Assembly: GCF_000150275.1 (NCBI RefSeq)
Contig: NW_002060944.1
Coordinates: 1,005,232-1,069,231, forward strand
Origin: Trichoplax adhaerens
Lineage: Eukaryota; Animalia; Placozoa
Length of the DNA: 64,000 nucleotides
Direction of reading: 5' to 3'
Made by a program: the position numbers and the translations under genes. The notes under the pieces were generated by a model, which was not told the origin of the DNA, did no database searches, and was given only the letters and a program-made list of their open reading frames with translations. Positions within the stretch are counted from its first letter, which is position 1, and every line of letters starts with the position of its first letter. This document shows positions 41,725 through 51,300 of this stretch, in pieces.

Positions 41725-44700
41725 ATGTCTTCGCTTTTAACCTTCGATGCGTTAACACACGCCATTGCTGGAGCTTCTGTAAGCTTTTACCTAGACTAAA
41801 TTCTTGGCTAATTGTTCATTTTAGACTTGATTGTGTATAACTACAATGTTGCCTGTTAATGAATACAGTAAGGTTGATGTCAAAAACAGTAAGTAGAGAA
41901 GGCATGAGTAAAAAGGATCGACTGTAAAACCAGAACATTTATAGCGATCGATCAATACAGTTAGTTGTATTGACTGTAAGAATGCCTTTGATTATGTTAT
42001 TACTTTAGCGTTAGCCATTCCTTGCACAGTACACAGTCGACACTATCGCATTCTGATAACGGTCGAAAAGTTGCAAGGTTGCAAGCTATTAAACCGTATT
42101 GCATATGCGCTCATACAATCCATTATTACTATCCATATATCATGTCCGTTTATAGCCATTCGTGCAAATTTTGGTCAATGGATGCGTGCATCATCTTCAA
42201 AGCTTGTTTATTTCTGATAATTTTTCATGATTATCGTATTATTCTAAATAGGGCAGCGCGGTAGCGATGTCTACCTTTTATCCATTAGATCTGGCTAGAA
42301 CTCGTCTGCAAGGTAATGTATAGGAGATTTTGTACAGATTTAGGCGGCATTTAGACACAACACTTTGCAAGTATGGCAGTTGAGCTTTTTGCATGCTCAA
42401 TACTTTAGTGCTTATTCCTACGGGCTCTACTGAAATTAGAATAGCATTTCATAGAGTGCATGGATGGGTTATTTCGATGTGCCAGCTAGCTCATACTGTA
42501 CACTGTATGTTACGATACATCATGATCAGCCAACTCTGTCAACGTATTAGCTCAACCCTAATTAATGGAGAACATCTCCGCATGGAGTTAACACCAAATC
42601 TGAGATAGTGGGCTGATGAAGCATTCGCCGATTCAGTATCTCAACCTTGATGTTAACTTTAATTAATTCTTTACTTAGGGTTAACCTCTGACGTTGACAT
42701 TCTTATAACCAGGTTGTCTGAGCGCGTTTATATTAAATACTGTGTTTAGCTATCTAATTCGGATATATAAACAACCACCTTAGCGTACTTATATGCTCAC
42801 GTGATACATATGCACTGTATATTTAGCTACTGCTTAACAAAGTCAATTCTAGCTGACTTGATTTCTGTAGCAATAGCTGAAATAAGGCTGATGCAATTCT
42901 GTTGCTTGATAGTAAGCCATGTGCACTTATTAAACTGTCGAACATCGTGCGAGTTAGGCAGCTATCAGCTTGCGAATGAGCTTGAAAGATAAATACATGG
43001 CGCAATTGCAGTACTTTACTAACTATAAATACCTCTGTATTTATATTACTTTTTGTTAATATTTTTCATTGATATCATCGTATGCCTTTGTGGATCTTTG
43101 CATGATCAATGTATAGTTGATATGCAGACCAAACTGGTTAAACCAACCCATCAGATATTAGCCAAAATTATCCGAGAGGAAGGATTGTAAGATAAATTGT
43201 TTTATAACCATTACTTTAAAATATTGCAAATACAATAGAATCATATGAACAACACGGGTTAATAACTAAACCAATTGTCGCTACACTTTCTCCGTAGATC
43301 TGCTCTTTATACCGGCTTCGGACCTGTGCTAACCAGCCTGTATTGTTCGAATTTTGTCTATTTTTATGCCTTCAATGGATTGAGGATGTTGGATGTGGTT
43401 AAACAACTACCTTTAACTCAGTCAGTTAGTGATTTAGTGGTTGGAATGGTTGCTGGTAAGTCTTTCGCGCTTGAATATTATTTCAAAATATATATTTAGA
43501 TATGTTCATCAATTAAATATTGGACCAACCTATTGGTAGTATCGATTGTAGTGTATGGTTAAGCCATTACATTTTCATAGATTATGGAAAGAGAACATTA
43601 CTTTAAGTGGAAATAAGAAAATTAATTAATTGCGCACTTCTTAATTTTTGAAGGAGTTTATTTCAATTCGAGATCATTAGCGGCATTCAATATAATAGCT
43701 AAATTTAATTCTCTGTAGATTCTGTCATATTAGAAATCGTGATGTTAAATTTTTGTTATAGTACTGAGTTTATGCGTTTCTACTTGCTATCTTCATTTTA
43801 CGAGCTTAAAAAAAGACAACAATATAAACAGTATAGTAATTGTGAATGTTATGCTTACAGTCTTGAATTAAAACTTGCTAAGTGTTGGTAATGTAATACA
43901 GGTACTATTAATGTTTTTGCAACAACTCCACTTTGGGTTGCAAATACAAGACTGCGTTTGCAAGGTGTGACTGTTCGTGATTATAACAATAAAGTCATAA
44001 AAAAGACTCAGTATACCGGTATTTTTGGTAAGTTGACGTTAATGTAATGCCACCTAATTCAAATTGAGCTACATTGTATACGAGTAGACAGTCTAATTGA
44101 TAAAGTATCGTTATTATAATGGCAGATTGCTTTAGACGTATTATCAAGGAAGAGGGAATACTTTCCTTATGGAGTGGTCTAGCACCATCATTGGTATTAT
44201 GTTGTAATCCCGCTATTCAGTTCATGTCATATGAAGCTCTTAAAAGATACATTACTCGAGGAAAAAACAATATGCAGGTTACTCGTTAAAATCATTTAAA
44301 GCTGGAGTCTTCAAATGAAATAGCGCTATTATTATTATTATGATTACTACTATTAATTTACATGAATAGCCTTATGTCGAAATGGTTGCCGCTGGTTACT
44401 ATTCTATTTTATCACTTAGCTCATAATAGGTCGTAACTTGTATGTACAACTGGTGTTTTTACTGTAGATTCCATCTTGGTTGGTATTCCTAATGGGCGCA
44501 ATCTCAAAGGCTATTGCAACTGTGCTCACTTACCCTCTGCAAGTCTCTCAAGCTCGTTTAAGGGTAACTTCATATAAAATAACTGCCGCATAAAGACAGG
44601 TGTCGTTAATATTAACTATTAGTTTATATGTCCATAAATACCCTTAGCACAATACTTCTGAAAAGGCCAATAAGAAGCGTACCTTCATTACTATCATGCA

Positions 44701-44993
44701 GGAGATAATTAGGTTTGTAACTCATTGTGTATTAATTCGTAAGTTTACCGAAATATTTAAGATTATTAATCCTTAAAGATCAACCTAACATGACAGTCAC
44801 ACATCGAATTTTACTCTGTCTTATTTACCTCGCTAGGCATGAAGGTTTCTCTGGTCTATTCAAAGGCTTGGAGGCGAAGCTATTACAGACCGTCTTAACT
44901 ACAGCTTTGATGTTTACCATGTATGAAAAGATTATGTCGTTCGTTCTGTTTGTAACGAAGGCATCACGAAAGAAGGCATCATTGTCTGCTTAA
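41725..44993 (+). CDS. SLC25A17: Peroxisomal cofactor carrier PMP34, copy B, multi-exon
   Basis: [18 protein letters not shown]|[86 protein letters not shown]; same intron positions as copy A. Confidence 0.94.
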
Positions 44994-45899
44994 CTCGCAT
45001 GTAATCTAGTGCATTGTTAAAATTAGTTTTCTTCAATATCTTTGATATCAAACATTTTTTGTACAAAGACTTGTAGTAAATGTAATATTGCATCGTTAAT
45101 ATATGTTTATAAAGTTCTTTTGTACAGACTATAATACAGTATGCAGTAATGATATGATTAATTATCCGCTGTAATTTGTACCTTCACGAATAGTAGGTCC
45201 TTAAATTAACGATTATAATTTAGATGATATTTATTAGTGGATATTTATAATAGTTCAAGAACGATGTACATGTACTGCATATCTGAAAATTTGTAACGGA
45301 AAATGTACCAGCTATTGATGGTTGCTATTATGCCGAAGAATATTACCCCCATACGTTGTAAAGTATTTGCTAGCAGTATCAAAAAATCATTCAATGTGTT
45401 CATGAATGTCATGGAATAAATAGGTAGAAGGGCTCATGCGTTACTATTATTGCAAGCTTTATTACAACTTTGTTTTACGCGTAGTATAAATTTATGCAAA
45501 AACATGAATTTTAAGATAAAAAATAAAAATATATTTGCTGGCTCTAGGCTACCGATATTTTCAGGTTTGTTCCTAATCGATACCGTAAGAATTCTTGTTT
45601 CTGGTAGTTACGCGTTATCAACTTTGCATTACTTTTGCTTGATATCTTAATTTGCGTAGTAGTTGTAAGCAGTGTAGCGTGCAATAATGTCATATATATT
45701 GTACAGCATTTTTGTGCATCAGATTTACATAACAGAGTCAGACTGCCAGAGTACAGCATTAGGCGAAGAAAATGAGGTGTAGAGAGAAGATTGCTTTGAG
45801 TTAGGATACATCATTAATTTAGCAAGATTCCAAGCACACCATATTACAGTAATATACTACTGCATGCTGTACAGTCTACCGTACCAAAGTTTGCATGTG

Positions 45900-46143
45900 G
45901 TATTACTAATTATTATATAATCCATTAAGACTTTACCATCTTAGATAAGACTATGTTATACAATCCATTTCTAATTATTATATAATCTATTAATACTTTA
46001 CCATCTTAGATAAGACTATGTTATATAATCCATTAACACTTTACCACCTTAGATAAGACTGTTATATAATCCATTAACACTTTACCATCTTAGATAAGAC
46101 TGTTATATAATCCATTAACACTTTACCATCTTAGATAAGACTC
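45900..46143. repeat. Minisatellite, about five copies of a 41-bp unit
   Basis: GTTATATAATCCATTAACACTTTACCATCTTAGATAAGACT is repeated. Confidence 0.93.
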
Positions 46144-46211
46144 TTTTTACATACAGTATGGAAGAAAGTAGAAACTATTATTTACTTTACGATTACGGCA
46201 GTCAAAATAGT

Positions 46212-46236
46212 CAGGGACTTATCTTAGTAGTCCCTG
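46212..46236. mobile_element. 25-bp TIR-only mini-element (CAGGGACT-N9-AGTCCCTG)
   Basis: Perfect 8-bp inverted ends and a perfect 7-bp flanking duplication AAATAGT (46205-46211, 46237-46243). Confidence 0.68.
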
Positions 46237-47001
46237 AAATAGTGTGCAGCAGTGTTTTGCAGTAGAAACGAATTCTATGATATATTATAAAAATAGCATA
46301 GTGAATATGCATACCATAGTCTGCTACGAATACCAGCAGCACTACTCAGTGTATCTTGCTATACTGTGCGATCTATATAAAAGCTTTTACATGTGAGCAG
46401 ATCGAATACACCACTTGTATGACTGTATAGAGAGACTAACCGATACTGTACAGGCGAATGTTCTGTGTACACTGCCTGATTTCGAGTACCAACAGTACAG
46501 TACTGTAGTTGGCAATCTTGCCGATGGCGGCCATGATTTCCCTGAGGAGGCTCGTAATTCCACTGAAGGAAAATCTACTGTAGTAACATGATAACTTTAA
46601 ATCTTAGCAGATCTAGAGAAAGATAATATCCCTTAGCGTCTAGATTCTGATTTAAAAGCTAATTGTATTTGGCAGTGTTGTGTTATATCGCATGAAAGCC
46701 TTGCGTTCCGAAAGAAAGTGAAGATTATTAATTCCAATCAGATTTTGATATTAATGCAGGTGGATTGAAATACTTTGCAATGCAGCAATTCTTAAATAGG
46801 CTTTTCTGATCTGCCAATTTTAGCTGATACCATTGGTATTAACACTATTGCTATTGATAGTTTTAGCACCACGATTGAAGAATTTGAAAGCTACAACTGA
46901 TTTATCCTATTGCGACGGAAAATTTCCACACTAGTGGCCTACAACTTCTACAAGATTCACATAAACATACGCGTAATTTTGCCTAGCTACTCGATTGAAT
47001 C

Positions 47002-47742
47002 ATGCCATGCTATCGCTTCTACTTAAATTCCAACCTGGTCAAAAATGGTAGAGTTGCCTTACAAGGCGATCAGTTACATCATATGAAGAATGTAATGCGA
47101 CTGAGAGTCGGAGAAACGGTAGAAATTATAAATGGTAGAAATCAATTAGCACAGGCCAGGATCGATGCTTATCAAGGCAATCAAATTGCTCACGTAAACA
47201 TTGATCAAGTCTTGACGCAATTAGTACTGGATAAACCGAGAATCAATTTAATTCAGCCACTTATACGAAGTAAAGGCTTAGATCTTGTCATCGAGAAATG
47301 TACTGAATTAGGAGTAAGCCATTTTTACCTCTACGCCAGTGAACTTGGTGAAATTTCGCAATTTAGCTCTGCACGTTGTAAGAAATTAACTGAGATTGCT
47401 ATAAGCGCTATAAAGCAATGTGGCCGCCTCGATTTACCAACGTTGACATTTGCTGATCGTTTGCATAATTTAAAATTACAATCAAATGTGCACCCAATAT
47501 GTTTTGGTGATACTAGGCACTTGGATAATGCTCAGGTTGGATTTACGCCTCAATCCACCCTAGCTCAATGTAAAACTGTCTGCATCGGACCTGAGAAAGG
47601 ATTTTCCGATAAAGAAATCAACTATTTAGAAAATCAACTTGGTGCTACTGGCATCAAGATAAGTCCTTTCATCTTAAGAAGCGAAACTGCCTCTATTACG
47701 CTGACGGCCTTGACAAGCTATGCAAGCATATTGAAACAATAA
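47002..47742 (+). CDS. rsmE: 16S rRNA m3U1498 methyltransferase (SPOUT family), intronless, bacterial type
   Basis: Full-length 246 aa with the RsmE motifs HHMKNVMRLRVGE, LDLVIEKCTELGV, AIKQCGRLDLP, CIGPEKGFSDKE and ILRSETA. Confidence 0.95.
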   Translation: MPCYRFYLNSNLVKNGRVALQGDQLHHMKNVMRLRVGETVEIINGRNQLAQARIDAYQGNQIAHVNIDQVLTQLVLDKPRINLIQPLIRSKGLDLVIEKCTELGVSHFYLYASELGEISQFSSARCKKLTEIAISAIKQCGRLDLPTLTFADRLHNLKLQSNVHPICFGDTRHLDNAQVGFTPQSTLAQCKTVCIGPEKGFSDKEINYLENQLGATGIKISPFILRSETASITLTALTSYASILKQ

Positions 47743-48339
47743 TGCTTTCCACTTACAGTGCAATGCATCTACAACGTCATTATCGCCAGATCATGTTGTG
47801 CTATTCAATTGTTGTATGTTATGGTGATAGCGCCTTTTTATCGTAGTAAGAGTCATGCATGGCCTATATTTTATATAAATATTATTAAACTGTAACGTCA
47901 AGAGTAATTCATATTTTATTTTTTATGAACGATCTGTCGTCAGATTTTGGTTCTAAAAATATATTATATTATAACATAAATTACAAAATAACAGATACGT
48001 AATGAACACGATTTACGTCATCGAGCTCAGAATTCCTTGCTTTATGCAATAGTTATCAATTTGGTTAAAAAAATATCGAACTTGGCATTTCTCTCATGCT
48101 CGCAATATCCTATTAAATTACAACAACCATGATCATCGTTCAAAAATAATGGGCTATTTACACAATTGATCACGGTATTTATAACTACAGAAATGATATT
48201 CCATTAATAATATTATTATTTACCTACTATAAAGAATAATGAAATGAAAATAATAAGCTGGTAAAAAATATTCTTTGTTATAGCATTAAGACATCATCCC
48301 ACTTTTGCTAGGTAAATATGGGTTTACAGTGCGCTACTG

Positions 48340-51300
48340 TCATGAGGTCTGTTCAGGCTCTTCCGTAAAATTTTCAGTTGCAAAAGCCATAGCTTCCTGA
48401 AGTCGTGACAGCCTGTAAAGTCAAAAAATAATTGGATATTGCTTATTACACTTATAGCAATTTATTTGCACGATAGTTGACTTTCAGATTTATGCAGTAC
48501 GAGTAATTCTAAAGTTAAGGCAGAACAATAGATATTTATTATATAACCTTCCACTGCGGCTAGATGGCCGTTGTCCTGCAGAATATGGTCGCTCATCCAT
48601 TGCGCTCTTGGAAGGTGATATTGCTGCAATAGTAAAATTCAGCAAACAAGAATTTAAATGAAAGATTTAATGTGTAATTTGTACACATATACTTTGAATA
48701 TACAATAATAATTCTTGATAACATGACTGAATCGATTATACATGACAGTCAAATCTAGATTTCTAGTTTTACTAGCAACGCAATTAACTTGACTTCAACG
48801 ATGTATAAAATAACAGGAATTTATTATGTCCTACTCTGCTACTACTGTTTTTTTGTTATAAACCTACACTACCAAAAGATTAGTAGTAGTTCAGCTCCTT
48901 ATAGAAAAATATGCTGTGCAATTGATACTAAGGATCTCAATATGTAAAAATAAATAATACATCGTTTTATCATTGTACGCGAATATATACTAAAGTGTAA
49001 ATTTGAAGTTAATCATACATCGTTTAGACATGGCTTGTACAGGGAGTAGCTCATCGATTGATTTCCGGATAGAATTAAATCTATATATTGCAATTCCATA
49101 GGAAATAACAAGAAGTCATTATTTTATCATTACACATAGAACGATATTAATAAAATAAATAGGCAAGCAAACCTTTCTTGTACTGAAGTTTCAAATGTAT
49201 GCAATTGCCTTGTAGAAAATTTAATTATTTCCTCTACCTCTTTGGACTCGAATCCTATATATGGCAGAAATTTTCGTTCAATTATTATATTGCAATACTT
49301 TGTAATAAGCTCGTTAAAAGCCGTAGAGATATATCCGTAGTAAGTAAGTAAGTACTTGTACTGAGTTGTACATAATAGAATCGGTAATACTGTATATCGC
49401 TATTAATGGAGATATATGGGACTGCAAGAAATACAACGCCAACCTGACATTTTTCTCATAATAATAGTTGCAGAACCCGGTCGTTTCGGATTATTTTTCG
49501 ATCTCTTTTGTTTCTTGGAGTTAGAATATAACACAAAAGTCCAAATATCTTATACATTAACATACTTGCGAAAATCTAGCATAACGATTAGCTTCTATAC
49601 TAGATACCTTGTTCAAGGATTCCAGATTTAGAACAAGTTCCCATATCTTGGCTAAAAATCTAACACATGAGAAGCATTACTTTAGCTGCAACAGCCGATG
49701 AAATTACTCAATAGTCTGCTAACATTCTTATTTGTTACAAGTATAAATCAATAAAAGGCATATGATTACCCCCTATATTCCGGAGTTGACTCAACAGGAT
49801 TTCCTTAATTTCAATTTTAAAGAGAATATTTTGGACATCATTTGCACAAAAATATTGCAGTGAAGAGAAAATAGGCATCAAATAAATTATAGCGATTTGT
49901 GCTAACAATTTTACTGACCTATTAGTAAATATTCTGTTGCGGTAGAAATTAACTTTAGTGATTCCTAAATAATGAAAAGAACCATTTTTAAGTTTTTGCA
50001 AGATAGTCTCGTGTATAGAATTTTCAGGTAAGAAGAGAATATCCAATGGTGATAGTCAACGTTGTTATATCTACAAACGATTATGTAAAGTAATGATTCA
50101 GATCTGTCACTACTTCTAGGCTAGATACCCATATCTCTTGAAAAAATGCAATGACAGCTGTCATAAATCATCAAGCAGTTTCATATTGACAACTGACTAC
50201 AATACAGTGGCAGAACACAAAACGTATTTAAAAGCAGTATGCATCGTGAGATAACTTACCATATCTTCAATAAAAGATATCTGATTTCGTTGTATATCAA
50301 GTATTTCGAGAGCCGGAAATTGAACATTTATTCTCTTTAAATAGTTGTAATAGATACCATTAAAGACTATTTATACGTTAATACTTCATACTTGTATTAC
50401 GACGATAATCATTGAATATGAAGTACCGATATTGATGAAATCAGATTGTCAGCTGCTCGCAGTTCTTGCAGTCGCCTGAAAGTGTCAAGTTTTTATCTTG
50501 ATAAGGATACTTACCGGATAGTATTCAGAATTCAGTTTAATTAAATAAATACAAACCCCATTTTCCCTAATGATTCCAAAGTCTGTATTTTATTTCGGCT
50601 GATATTAAGATTCTATCAAAGTAAATTAAATTCAAAATTAGTTGGGCATGTCGCTCAATAAATCGTCCAGTTTTTGGATTTCTTATGTATTTCTATTTCT
50701 ATTCTGGAACGACATGCTTGTATAGATTTATTTAAAATGATTGTTAACACTTACATTCAAAACATGTAAACCATTCAAGCTACCAACATCGGTAAGACTG
50801 TTACCTGATAGATCTAATTCCGACAGCTAGTAAAAAATTGCATAAATTATGTAGATTTGATTAATCTAATTTCACTTATAACTAGCGAAATGGTGCAGTC
50901 TGAGTTACAGCATGAAAAATACTCGCATAAATTTTTTGATAATGTTCATTATTATGGTGCTTGTATCGTACTAACTGATTTGCAAGCAAGACTATCCGGT
51001 AGATGCTCTATTTGATTATTTGCTAATCGTAGTTCCGTTAAGGCTTTCAAACAGCAGATATTCTATAGATATCAACAGAAATAAGTCATATCATCACAAA
51101 ATTGAGATGCATCAGTCATAAATAATGGTATTATGATCCCAGCTGATACTTTTACGGGAGGTATTTTATTTAGATTAACGAATCACGAAATGACTGAATG
51201 AACGACTTGAAATTATAATTACTCCTATACTAGCCCCATTATATCACATAAATGCCGAAAGATACTCACCGTTAAATCATGGATACAATTGTTGCTCATG

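Follow-up and report, generated by a model that had tools for sequence, protein, structure and literature searches.

We asked how the placozoan Trichoplax adhaerens came to carry, between ordinary spliced genes, a gene for a protein of the bacterial RsmE family, and what that protein might do in an animal. The gene lies on a 9.7-Mb scaffold, and the whole stretch of 64,000 nucleotides that was analyzed is referred to below as the window. Genes that animals have acquired from bacteria and kept code mostly for enzymes of metabolism, detoxification or defence; it is unusual for a ribosome-modifying enzyme to be transferred and then held under selection. The chlamydial transfer of rsmE has itself been known since 2013, when Driscoll et al. 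(Genome Biol Evol 5:621; PMC3641634) reported the same gene, on a large eukaryotic scaffold, as a candidate for lateral gene transfer (LGT). In that study rsmE was "clearly of chlamydial origin", was one of 12 candidates for bacteria-to-Trichoplax LGT and belonged to a group of 10 "likely recent transfers" that lacked introns and any other eukaryotic feature (PMC3641634). Expression and cross-species data were not part of that report, whereas here we describe a spliced 5′UTR, transcripts, orthologues with 68-69% identity, one of them syntenic, and purifying selection. We thus add evidence for splicing, transcription and conservation of the gene across placozoan lineages.

An intact RsmE-family gene

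The features of the locus, in window coordinates, are as follows.

44119..44990, + strand: last recognisable coding exons of a mitochondrial-carrier-family gene (Mito_carr matches)
46523..46531, + strand: GATGGCGGC motif, one exact match, shortly before the most 5′ start of any RNA contig
46535..46759, + strand: non-coding exon 1 of rsmE (5′UTR, minimum extent), from an X5 RNA contig
46760..46860, + strand: spliceosomal GT..AG intron of 101 nt in the 5′UTR, from RNA contigs of X2, X5 and X9
46861..47001, + strand: 5′UTR portion of exon 2, with an in-frame TGA (46996-46998) at its end
47002..47742, + strand: RsmE-family CDS, with a PUA-like N-terminal domain at about 47059-47163 (Pfam) and a SPOUT methyltransferase domain at about 47236-47712
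47743..48130, + strand: 3′UTR (provisional end), with ATTAAA signals at 47884 and 48112
48326..50612, − strand: 3′ part of a convergent LRR-type gene, from joints in X2, X5 and X9 and LRR-like exon peptides
48543-48623, 49173-49253, 50259-50334, 50427-50474 and 50556-50612, − strand: some of the exons of the LRR-type gene

A preliminary description of this DNA had claimed an intact, full-length and intronless RsmE ORF. An uninterrupted ATG-to-TAA ORF of 246 aa occupies exactly 47002-47742, and its product has the architecture of the family, in which a PUA-like domain is followed by a SPOUT domain over about 240 aa. Pfam matched PUA_4 (PF20260, 6.3e-12) at residues 20-54 and Methyltrans_RNA (PF04452, 1.4e-28) at residues 79-237, and the NCBIfam model TIGR00046, "RsmE family", matched at 7.9e-36 with 123.6 bits against a cut-off of 41. 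The NCBIfam equivalog models for 16S rRNA (uracil1498-N3)-methyltransferase (PRK11713 series) all scored below their own cut-offs (23 of 23; the best, NF008692, reached 124.2 bits against 196), so the Trichoplax protein is a diverged member of the family to which an exact function cannot be transferred automatically. The ORF claim thus stands, and "intronless" holds for the CDS but not for the whole gene, which has the 101-nt intron in its 5′UTR. No second PF04452 gene was found in the whole T. adhaerens assembly, and rsmE is single-copy. The in-frame TGA two codons ahead of the start codon excludes an N-terminal extension in T. adhaerens; the 21-22 extra N-terminal residues of the predicted proteins P0002 and P0003 begin at TTG starts and were rejected as ORF-calling artefacts.

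The AF2 model of the protein (pLDDT 94.4, pTM 0.90) was compared with the PDB by Foldseek, and the best matches were 5o96, 5o95, 1nxz and 4e8b, with TM scores of 0.75-0.82 and E values down to 2.9e-20; at least the top 15 matches were all RsmE-family structures (TM 0.72-0.83). The model is a confident prediction of an RsmE-like fold, in which a PUA-like, RNA-binding domain at the N-terminus is followed by an alpha/beta SPOUT domain with a presumably knotted C-terminal SAM site. Like E. coli YggJ (4E8B) and Legionella Lpg2936 (5O95/5O96), the protein combines PUA and SPOUT domains at the same length and has the GPExG and LRxET motifs. Unlike them, it is the product of an animal nuclear gene with eukaryotic gene structure, shares only about 25% identity with either, has Lys for the second Gly of GPEGG, as in Chlamydiae, and has Gly at the equivalent of Arg93.

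Little or no variation is seen among 50 relatives at G196-P197-E198-x-G200 and L225-R226-x-E228-T229. The catalytic residues E198 and R226 are invariant in all 50 and map to Glu198 and Arg225 of Lpg2936 in a phmmer alignment to 5o95; changing the E. coli equivalent of Arg225, R223, to Ala inactivates the enzyme (PMC5699498). The third proposed RNA-binding residue of Lpg2936, Arg93, aligns with Gly92, with Lys91 and Arg89 close by, and this position is also variable in chlamydial homologues (K/A/R/N). The dimer-interface residues Lys100, Glu103, Gln143, Glu227 and Thr228 of Lpg2936 correspond to K99, E102, Q139, E228 and T229, each of which is invariant or nearly so among the relatives.

The gene falls within the chlamydial RsmE clade

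Chlamydial affinity had been suggested in the preliminary description. Among the best 120 of 850 matches, the named relatives outside placozoans were all Chlamydiota, at about 40% identity, and none of the named proteins was eukaryotic, in agreement with a bacterial origin. The closest, at 36-42% identity within those best 120 of 850, came from uncultured Parachlamydiales, Simkaniaceae and related MAGs, and these share GPEKGF and KQCGRLDLP with the placozoan protein and form one maximum-likelihood (ML) clade with it. The placozoan gene was placed within the chlamydial RsmE clade in a 99-row ML tree (support 100/97) and in a 38-row ML tree (96/98), which bears out the suggested affinity. In the larger tree the placozoan clade itself received 100/100, and its grouping with four metagenome sequences 100/85. 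One of these four lies on a contig (L085) with the same operon as the named Chlamydiota loci, and another has the same lipid A acyltransferase gene immediately upstream of it. The chlamydial order is YbbR-glycosyltransferase-lipid A acyltransferase-rsmE, with rsmE last in a dense operon, whereas placozoan rsmE is solitary. The placozoan protein also differs from chlamydial RsmE in its long stem branch (about 1 substitution per site), in 7 residues inserted ahead of GPEKG and in its basic N-terminus. In an AU test on the 38-row set, a position of placozoans outside the sampled chlamydial sequences, as sister to them all, was not rejected (p = 0.44); a basal or unsampled lineage could therefore have been the donor, and we limit our claim to a place in the chlamydial clade and name no specific donor family.

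A vertically inherited, organellar RsmE of eukaryotic descent, or acquisition of the nuclear gene for plastid-targeted RsmE from an alga, might be considered, given that plants and algae have a plastid RsmE and that Trichoplax eats algae. Against such a source stand the named matches, which are exclusively chlamydial in the best 120 of 850, a protein start that is exactly the bacterial MPxxRF, with no transit peptide and no intron in the CDS, and the tree of Driscoll et al., which included plastid-type sequences and put the gene with Chlamydiae (PMC3641634). Both of our ML trees were built from non-eukaryotic and placozoan sequences, so on plastid RsmE the argument comes from the match list and the published tree; in our trees the gene sat within the chlamydial clade, with no grouping with holozoan or fungal RsmE. 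We regard a eukaryotic or algal source as very improbable. A horizontal transfer from Chlamydiota is supported by these sequence comparisons, and rsmE appears to be absent from other animals, judging from the protein-database match list and the earlier study (PMC3641634).

The transcript is spliced

The X5 RNA contig (record 16) covers 46535-46757 and then 46859-47744, and the joint can be shifted 2 bases rightward to give GT..AG. RNA contigs from three studies (X2, X5 and X9) share this joint in the 5′UTR. The runs compared with the window were Logan contigs, which are uninformative on expression level, strand and transcript ends; the + strand of the rsmE transcript was deduced from the GT..AG intron. 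Adapter-like loose letters precede the start of the X5 contig at 46535, and exon 1 contains the start codons of three short uORFs (46588, 46692 and 46754). At the other end, records 12 of X2 and 23 of X9 run from 46859 through 48407 and continue into minus-strand exons; the rsmE 3′UTR and the 3′ end of the convergent LRR gene overlap, and RNA assemblers consequently fused both transcripts.

Just upstream of exon 1, the preliminary description had seen a YY1-like motif common to host promoters in the window, a claim that we could not sustain. The 9-mer GATGGCGGC occurs once in all 64 kb, and of its 7-mer core, ATGGCGG, there are 5 copies where 1.7 are expected, a count reached in 7 of 100 shuffles, so the excess lacks statistical support and no shared host-promoter motif is demonstrated. 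ATGGCGG was not found upstream of rsmE in the related loci L001-L003, and alignment of the promoter and 5′UTR among the three lineages was no better than expected for AT-rich DNA. GATGGCGGC is a possible core-promoter element.

rsmE is conserved among placozoan lineages and under purifying selection

Orthologues with 68-69% identity were found in two other placozoan-like genomes, one of them with downstream synteny. Synteny, composition and non-coding flanks lead us to regard L001-L003 as placozoan. All copies have 246 codons with no indels across three lineages. Between T. adhaerens and L001 or L002, dN/dS was about 0.17 at a dS of about 1.1, which is near saturation and makes these deep estimates approximate; between L001 and L002 dN/dS was 0.155. 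Over all comparisons dN/dS was 0.155-0.172 and dS was 0.5-1.1. Strains differ by one non-synonymous polymorphism, 47501 G>A (C167Y).

Could the gene be transcribed yet useless, a neutral relic? The three uORFs in the 5′UTR and the C167Y polymorphism would fit such a reading. A dN/dS of 0.16-0.17 over a dS of 0.5-1.1 argues against it, as do the unchanged length in three lineages and the intact catalytic motifs, and the position of C167 is itself variable among relatives. We therefore consider a relic highly improbable. An absence of transcription with dN/dS near 1 had been named as the pattern that would speak against domestication, and the observed pattern is the reverse: the 5′UTR is spliced, transcripts are present in three studies and dN/dS is far under 1.

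rsmE is part of an animal chromosome

The flanking genes had been described as spliced and animal-type, and a Pfam search run exon by exon on these neighbours agreed. Upstream, Mito_carr matched the exons at 44119-44286 (3.5e-12) and 44790-44990 (2e-9), confirming a gene of the mitochondrial-carrier family, a broader assignment than the PMP34-B of the preliminary description; downstream, the LRR-like gene has at least 11 introns in RNA contigs, which read CT..AC on the + strand. DNA-like contigs of X1 tile from the rsmE CDS into introns of the LRR gene, and RNA contigs connect the CDS with LRR exons, so that contigs from four other runs and the locus of a diverged relative, L001, back the linkage of rsmE to host genes. 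In L001 the last two coding exons of the LRR gene are kept beside rsmE (L001 2104-2198 and 2326-2426 match window 48335-48429 and 48535-48634). Synteny with relatives was seen on the downstream side only, in L001; for the 3-kb upstream flank of L002, neither a DNA search of the T. adhaerens genome nor tblastx against the window gave a match. The rsmE gene is host-like in base composition. No remnant of the donor operon was found in the 64-kb window, and the chlamydial-type lipid A acyltransferase was not found in the whole assembly with one query, a search with no positive control in the genome; the earlier statement that bacterial operon neighbours are missing is upheld to that extent.

Bacterial contamination or a chimeric assembly, which other chlamydial-like sequences in the genome project (cox3, fkpA-trmH; Driscoll et al., PMC3641634) might bring to mind, is effectively refuted and has next to no probability, given a spliceosomal intron joined to the CDS in RNA of three studies, independent contigs that tie the CDS to the LRR gene, the same linkage in a second placozoan-type genome, host-like composition with no other chlamydial operon gene found in the assembly, and an identity of only about 40% to any known bacterium.

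Taken together, the 5′UTR intron, the transcripts, the orthologues, the downstream synteny and the purifying selection indicate that the transfer is old and the gene domesticated. A placozoan ancestor would have acquired a chlamydial rsmE in its nuclear genome before the divergence of the lineages sampled; only rsmE of the donor YbbR-glycosyltransferase-lipid A acyltransferase-rsmE operon is present at the locus, and it would then have become an ordinary host gene with its own upstream non-coding exon, a 5′UTR intron and host-like composition. We conclude that rsmE is very probably an old chlamydial transfer that now serves as a domesticated host gene of the RsmE type.

Which ribosome might be the target?

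By analogy with characterised RsmE enzymes, the product would act as a homodimer that uses SAM to methylate N3 of the uridine equivalent to U1498 of E. coli 16S rRNA, and its substrate would be the assembled small ribosomal subunit. The U1498 uridine is universally conserved and lies at the top of helix 44 (h44), in the decoding centre; we take its equivalent to fall in the GUCGUAACAAGG stretch of h44. We know of no report of such a small-subunit modification in any other animal. That placozoans place m3U at the U1498-equivalent of their own ribosome, mitochondrial or cytosolic, by means of an ancient chlamydial RsmE has, in our estimate, slightly less than an even chance. An animal SPOUT-class enzyme that makes m3U, SPOUT1/Ptch, acts on 28S rRNA (PMC11641110); it differs from Trichoplax RsmE in belonging to another SPOUT family, in acting on the large subunit and in being vertically inherited, and the two are related at the superfamily level only.

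The bacterial-type mitochondrial small subunit is our tentative first choice of target, followed by the cytosolic 40S subunit or other RNA and then by ribosomes of the rickettsial endosymbiont. The plastid-targeted RsmE of plants and algae is likewise a nuclear-encoded eukaryotic RsmE, and it acts on the bacterial-type ribosome of an organelle. It differs in having transit peptides and in serving plastids, whereas placozoans have no plastid and their protein has no added targeting peptide. The first 22 residues of the placozoan proteins have a net charge of +2 to +3 and 0-1 acidic residues, compared with a mean charge of −1.6 and 3.7 acidic residues in 47 chlamydial-type relatives, and we read this basic, acid-poor N-terminus as only a hint of mitochondria. 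A cleaved mitochondrial signal is unlikely, since there is no added presequence and the N-terminus forms the first PUA strand.

Alternatively, RsmE may stay in the cytosol or nucleus and methylate the U1498-equivalent of 18S rRNA or another host RNA, which we consider possible, if somewhat doubtful. The h44 sequence near U1498 is universally conserved, and since the protein has gained neither an extension nor a signal at its N-terminus over its bacterial counterparts, the cytosol would be the default location. We know of no m3U at the U1498-equivalent of any 18S rRNA, which counts against a cytosolic target, as does the loss from the placozoan N-terminus of acidic residues typical of the bacterial relatives. 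Characterised RsmE, moreover, requires an assembled bacterial-type 30S subunit (PMC9508554).

That the host enzyme modifies the 16S rRNA of the rickettsial endosymbiont is improbable. Driscoll et al. proposed a role in "maintenance of RETA" (PMC3641634), a bacterial 30S subunit is the natural substrate of RsmE, and the assembly, which includes some symbiont scaffolds, yielded no second rsmE; those scaffolds are only fragments of the symbiont genome, however, so absence of a symbiont rsmE is not established. The gene is also chlamydial and not rickettsial, and the protein has no signal peptide or extension that would bring it into the symbiont compartment.

Implications for placozoan biology

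The basic finding was published in 2013, which limits what the present analysis adds; it narrows the functional options and corrects the picture of a recent acquisition devoid of eukaryotic traits to that of an old gene that is spliced, expressed and under constraint. To our knowledge, Chlamydiae are not among the known symbionts of placozoans, and rsmE may be a vestige of an earlier association between the two. The gene raises the question whether an animal ribosome, with that of mitochondria as the most plausible candidate, has a bacterial-type m3U in its decoding centre. If this is true, what horizontal transfer rewired in an animal would be the core machinery of translation, and not metabolism or defence.

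A full-length RsmE-family gene

Across several kilobases, the sole long ORF is rsmE (47002-47742, forward strand), which encodes a 246-residue product. In Pfam the product matched PF04452 (Methyltrans_RNA, 1.4e-28) and PF20260 (PUA domain of RsmE type, 6.3e-12), and it passed NCBIfam TIGR00046, "RsmE family RNA methyltransferase" (123.6 bits, cut-off 41), while staying under the cut-offs of all narrow NCBIfam "equivalog" models (best 124 bits vs 196), indicating a diverged but full-length family member and bearing out the intact ORF of the preliminary description. An in-frame TGA two codons 5′ of the ATG shows that the protein starts as its bacterial relatives do, with the MPxxRFY segment described earlier and without an added targeting peptide. 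Protein and PF04452 family searches of the whole T. adhaerens assembly (105.6 Mb, 1414 contigs) found no second RsmE, so the gene is single-copy.

An AlphaFold2 model of the product (50 relatives) had a pLDDT of 94.4 and a pTM of 0.90, and its best PDB matches were all RsmE structures with TM values of 0.72-0.83: Legionella 5O95/5O96, Haemophilus 1NXZ, E. coli 4E8B, Neisseria 5VM8 and Mycobacterium 4L69. Residues were mapped by a phmmer alignment to 5O95 together with the published account of this structure (PMC5699498).

Functional residues of Legionella RsmE (Lpg2936) and their placozoan counterparts
Catalytic pair: Glu198, Arg225; placozoan E198, R226
Dimer interface: Lys100, Glu103, Gln143, Glu227, Thr228; placozoan K99, E102, Q139, E228, T229

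These residues are invariant or nearly so in the 50 relatives. The E. coli counterpart of Arg225 is R223, and R223A is inactive (PMC5699498); RsmE acts as an antiparallel dimer (PMC9508554). Lpg2936 Arg93, the third proposed RNA-binding residue, aligns with Gly92, with Lys91 adjacent, at a site that is also variable in Chlamydiae.

Chlamydial affinity of rsmE

A protein search returned 850 homologues, among which P0002 and P0003 (68-69% identity) stood far above the others. The remaining top homologues were ~36-42% identical; each named one belongs to Chlamydiota (Parachlamydiales, Simkaniaceae, Neptunochlamydia and others), and no eukaryotic name occurs among the best matches. A 99-row tree (IQ-TREE, LG+C20 PMSF; ultrafast bootstrap/SH-aLRT) was built from the RsmE of 80 named genome loci, the placozoan copies and the top 17 metagenome matches. 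It recovered the placozoan clade (100/100), the placozoans with four metagenome proteins (100/85), and a clade of 51 rows that includes every named Chlamydiota sequence (100/97). For the separation from plastid and other eukaryotic RsmE, which had no rows in these trees, the evidence is the names of the best matches and the published tree (PMC3641634).

Two of the four sister proteins are themselves chlamydial by operon context. The gene for P0015 lies in the dense order YbbR-glycosyltransferase-lipid A acyltransferase-rsmE on contig L085, an order that recurs in named Chlamydiota loci (acyltransferase identity 47-55%), and the gene for P0013 directly follows this acyltransferase gene on the contig that carries it. 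In a 38-row tree the chlamydial clade including placozoans was again supported (96/98) with a polytomy at its base, and a topology with placozoans outside all the chlamydial sequences sampled, as their sister, survived an AU test (p = 0.44). rsmE can thus safely be placed in the chlamydial RsmE lineage, without assignment to one donor family. The chlamydial affinity suggested in the preliminary description is borne out by the named relatives and both maximum-likelihood clades; the feature is real and the horizontal-transfer reading is supported.

MAGs labelled "Verrucomicrobia bacterium" (loci L006, L010, L026) group within the chlamydial RsmE clade and have the YbbR-glycosyltransferase-lipid A acyltransferase-rsmE operon, so the taxonomy given by their submitters is probably mistaken. 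The same Trichoplax genome project reportedly contained cox3 and an fkpA-trmH fusion of "clear chlamydial origin" and no chlamydial 16S (PMC3641634); these may be further integrated chlamydial genes, one of them for another SPOUT RNA methyltransferase.

Integration and transcription of the locus

Neighbouring genes were searched exon by exon, and Logan contigs from four runs in four studies were aligned to 45000-50900. X1 is genomic-DNA-like and X9 is listed as RNA-derived; all are assembled contigs, informative on presence and splicing and not on expression level, strand or transcript ends.

44119-44286 and 44790-44990, forward: mitochondrial-carrier-family exons upstream of rsmE (Mito_carr 3.5e-12 and 2e-9)
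46588, 46692 and 46754, forward: ATGs of three short uORFs in the 5′UTR, from sequence
46760-46860, forward: 5′UTR spliceosomal intron (X2, X5, X9), canonical GT..AG once the joint is shifted by the allowed 2 bases
47884 and 48112, forward: ATTAAA signals after the stop codon, from sequence
Downstream of rsmE, reverse: convergent LRR-type gene with at least 11 CT..AC introns in RNA contigs

The LRR gene's exon peptides show the LxxLxLxxNxI pattern of leucine-rich repeats. The placement between intron-rich genes holds downstream, and the upstream gene lies in separate exons; that gene had been called PMP34-B, and its assignment stands at the level of the mitochondrial carrier family, with PMP34 not confirmed. 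As described earlier, bacterial operon neighbours are lacking: the genes that flank rsmE in Chlamydiae have left no trace in the window, and a search of the assembly with a chlamydial-type lipid A acyltransferase gave no match. X1 contigs tile the carrier gene through rsmE, and one of 4.1 kb runs from within the CDS (47245) across LRR gene introns, which independently confirms the assembly and speaks against a chimera.

The carrier gene 3′ end is separated from the promoter region of rsmE by a 41-bp tandem repeat (46000-46142; 3.4 copies with 96% matching), which coincides with the sole gap in the X1 tiling (45981-46113). After 48426, in the last LRR intron, an X1 contig carries a 21-nt insertion (AATAATTCATTTATTCAGTAG) relative to the window, an indel polymorphism between strains. 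Contigs of other runs differ from the window in the CDS at 47501 (G>A, Cys167 to Tyr, a residue variable among relatives) and 47586 (C>T, synonymous, Ile195), probably strain or haplotype variation.

Contigs of X2, X5 and X9 share one joint that skips 101 nt, and single contigs join a non-coding upstream exon, extending to at least 46535, to the whole CDS (X5 record 16, 46535-46757 plus 46859-47744; X9 record 23 likewise). The CDS is thus uninterrupted, as stated earlier, and the gene as a whole is not intronless: rsmE is transcribed and has gained a spliceosomal intron and, ahead of it, a first exon without coding sequence. Its 3′UTR overlaps that of the LRR gene, which is why RNA assemblers merged the two transcripts. 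At 47743-48407 the convergent 3′ ends overlap or abut closely (one merged contig in three runs), a possible natural antisense overlap.

The promoter motifs described earlier are present upstream, as an ACAGT/TACAG-rich tract (about 46440-46510) and GATGGCGGC (46523-46531). The furthest RNA contig 5′ end (46535) falls just 3′ of both, which fits a transcription start nearby. The YY1-like motif did not hold up as a window-wide host-promoter motif, since the 9-mer GATGGCGGC occurs once in the window, without significant enrichment of its 7-mer core there (5 observed vs 1.7 expected; 7/100 shuffles as high). The motif is also absent upstream of rsmE in contigs L001-L003. At a similar distance from the ATG, L002 (about 2620-2640) has CGATGCTTGCCATCAT where T. 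adhaerens has CGATGGCGGCCATGAT (46521-46538), a resemblance that may reflect chance or weak conservation of a promoter element.

Conservation and selection across placozoans

P0002 and P0003 are encoded on the short contigs L001-L003 (GC 33-35%, flanks non-coding-looking); their 21-22-residue N-terminal extensions start at TTG and were rejected as ORF-calling artefacts. Two blocks 3′ of rsmE in L001 (2104-2198 and 2326-2426) correspond to the two final coding exons of the LRR gene in the window (48335-48429 and 48535-48634) in the same order and orientation, diverged about as much as rsmE. No upstream synteny was recovered in comparison with T. adhaerens; the shared linkage is downstream, in L001. 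We take these contigs to represent other placozoan species with the gene apparently at the same locus.

The three placozoan-type copies have 246 codons each and zero indels. By the Nei-Gojobori method, dN/dS was 0.17 for T. adhaerens against L001 or L002, at a dS of about 1.1 that is near saturation, and 0.155 for L001 against L002 (dS 0.52). These codon comparisons are a clear indication of purifying selection over a long time, which contradicts both a neutral relic and a recent transfer.

Candidate substrates

The RsmE substrate is the assembled 30S subunit, not naked rRNA (PMC9508554).

To our knowledge the target uridine is universal together with its h44 surroundings, and mitochondrial, cytosolic and symbiont small subunits would therefore all present the site. 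We tentatively rank the mitochondrial small subunit first, because bacterial-type ribosomes occur in the host only in mitochondria and because the placozoan N-terminus has shifted in the direction that such a location predicts. Its first 22 residues have a net charge of +2 to +3 and include 0-1 acidic residues; the means for 47 chlamydial-type relatives are -1.6 and 3.7, with no acidic residue in 1/47 and a net charge reaching +3 in 2/47. A classical presequence does not fit, however, because the PUA domain has its first strand in this stretch, which could therefore not be removed by cleavage. The target that we place second, cytosolic 18S or another RNA, may apply instead. If a host ribosome is the target, an animal ribosome would carry this bacterial methylation of the decoding centre. 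Ribosomes of the rickettsial symbiont, in whose maintenance rsmE was proposed to act (PMC3641634), come last and seem very improbable for an enzyme without a signal peptide or other extension.

An old, domesticated gene

One of the 12 bacterial-like genes that Driscoll et al. 2013 (PMC3641634) reported from large eukaryotic scaffolds of T. adhaerens is rsmE; its bacterial origin, as described earlier, is correct and already published, and the literature searched contained no further report joining RsmE with Trichoplax or placozoa. Apparently new are the splicing of the 5′UTR, the RNA evidence, the conservation and synteny across lineages, the estimate of selection, the operon setting in the donor lineage and the audit of the active site. 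Together they bear out the domesticated transfer proposed earlier and replace the published view of a "recent, un-adapted" gene with that of an old, domesticated one, spliced and conserved across lineages.
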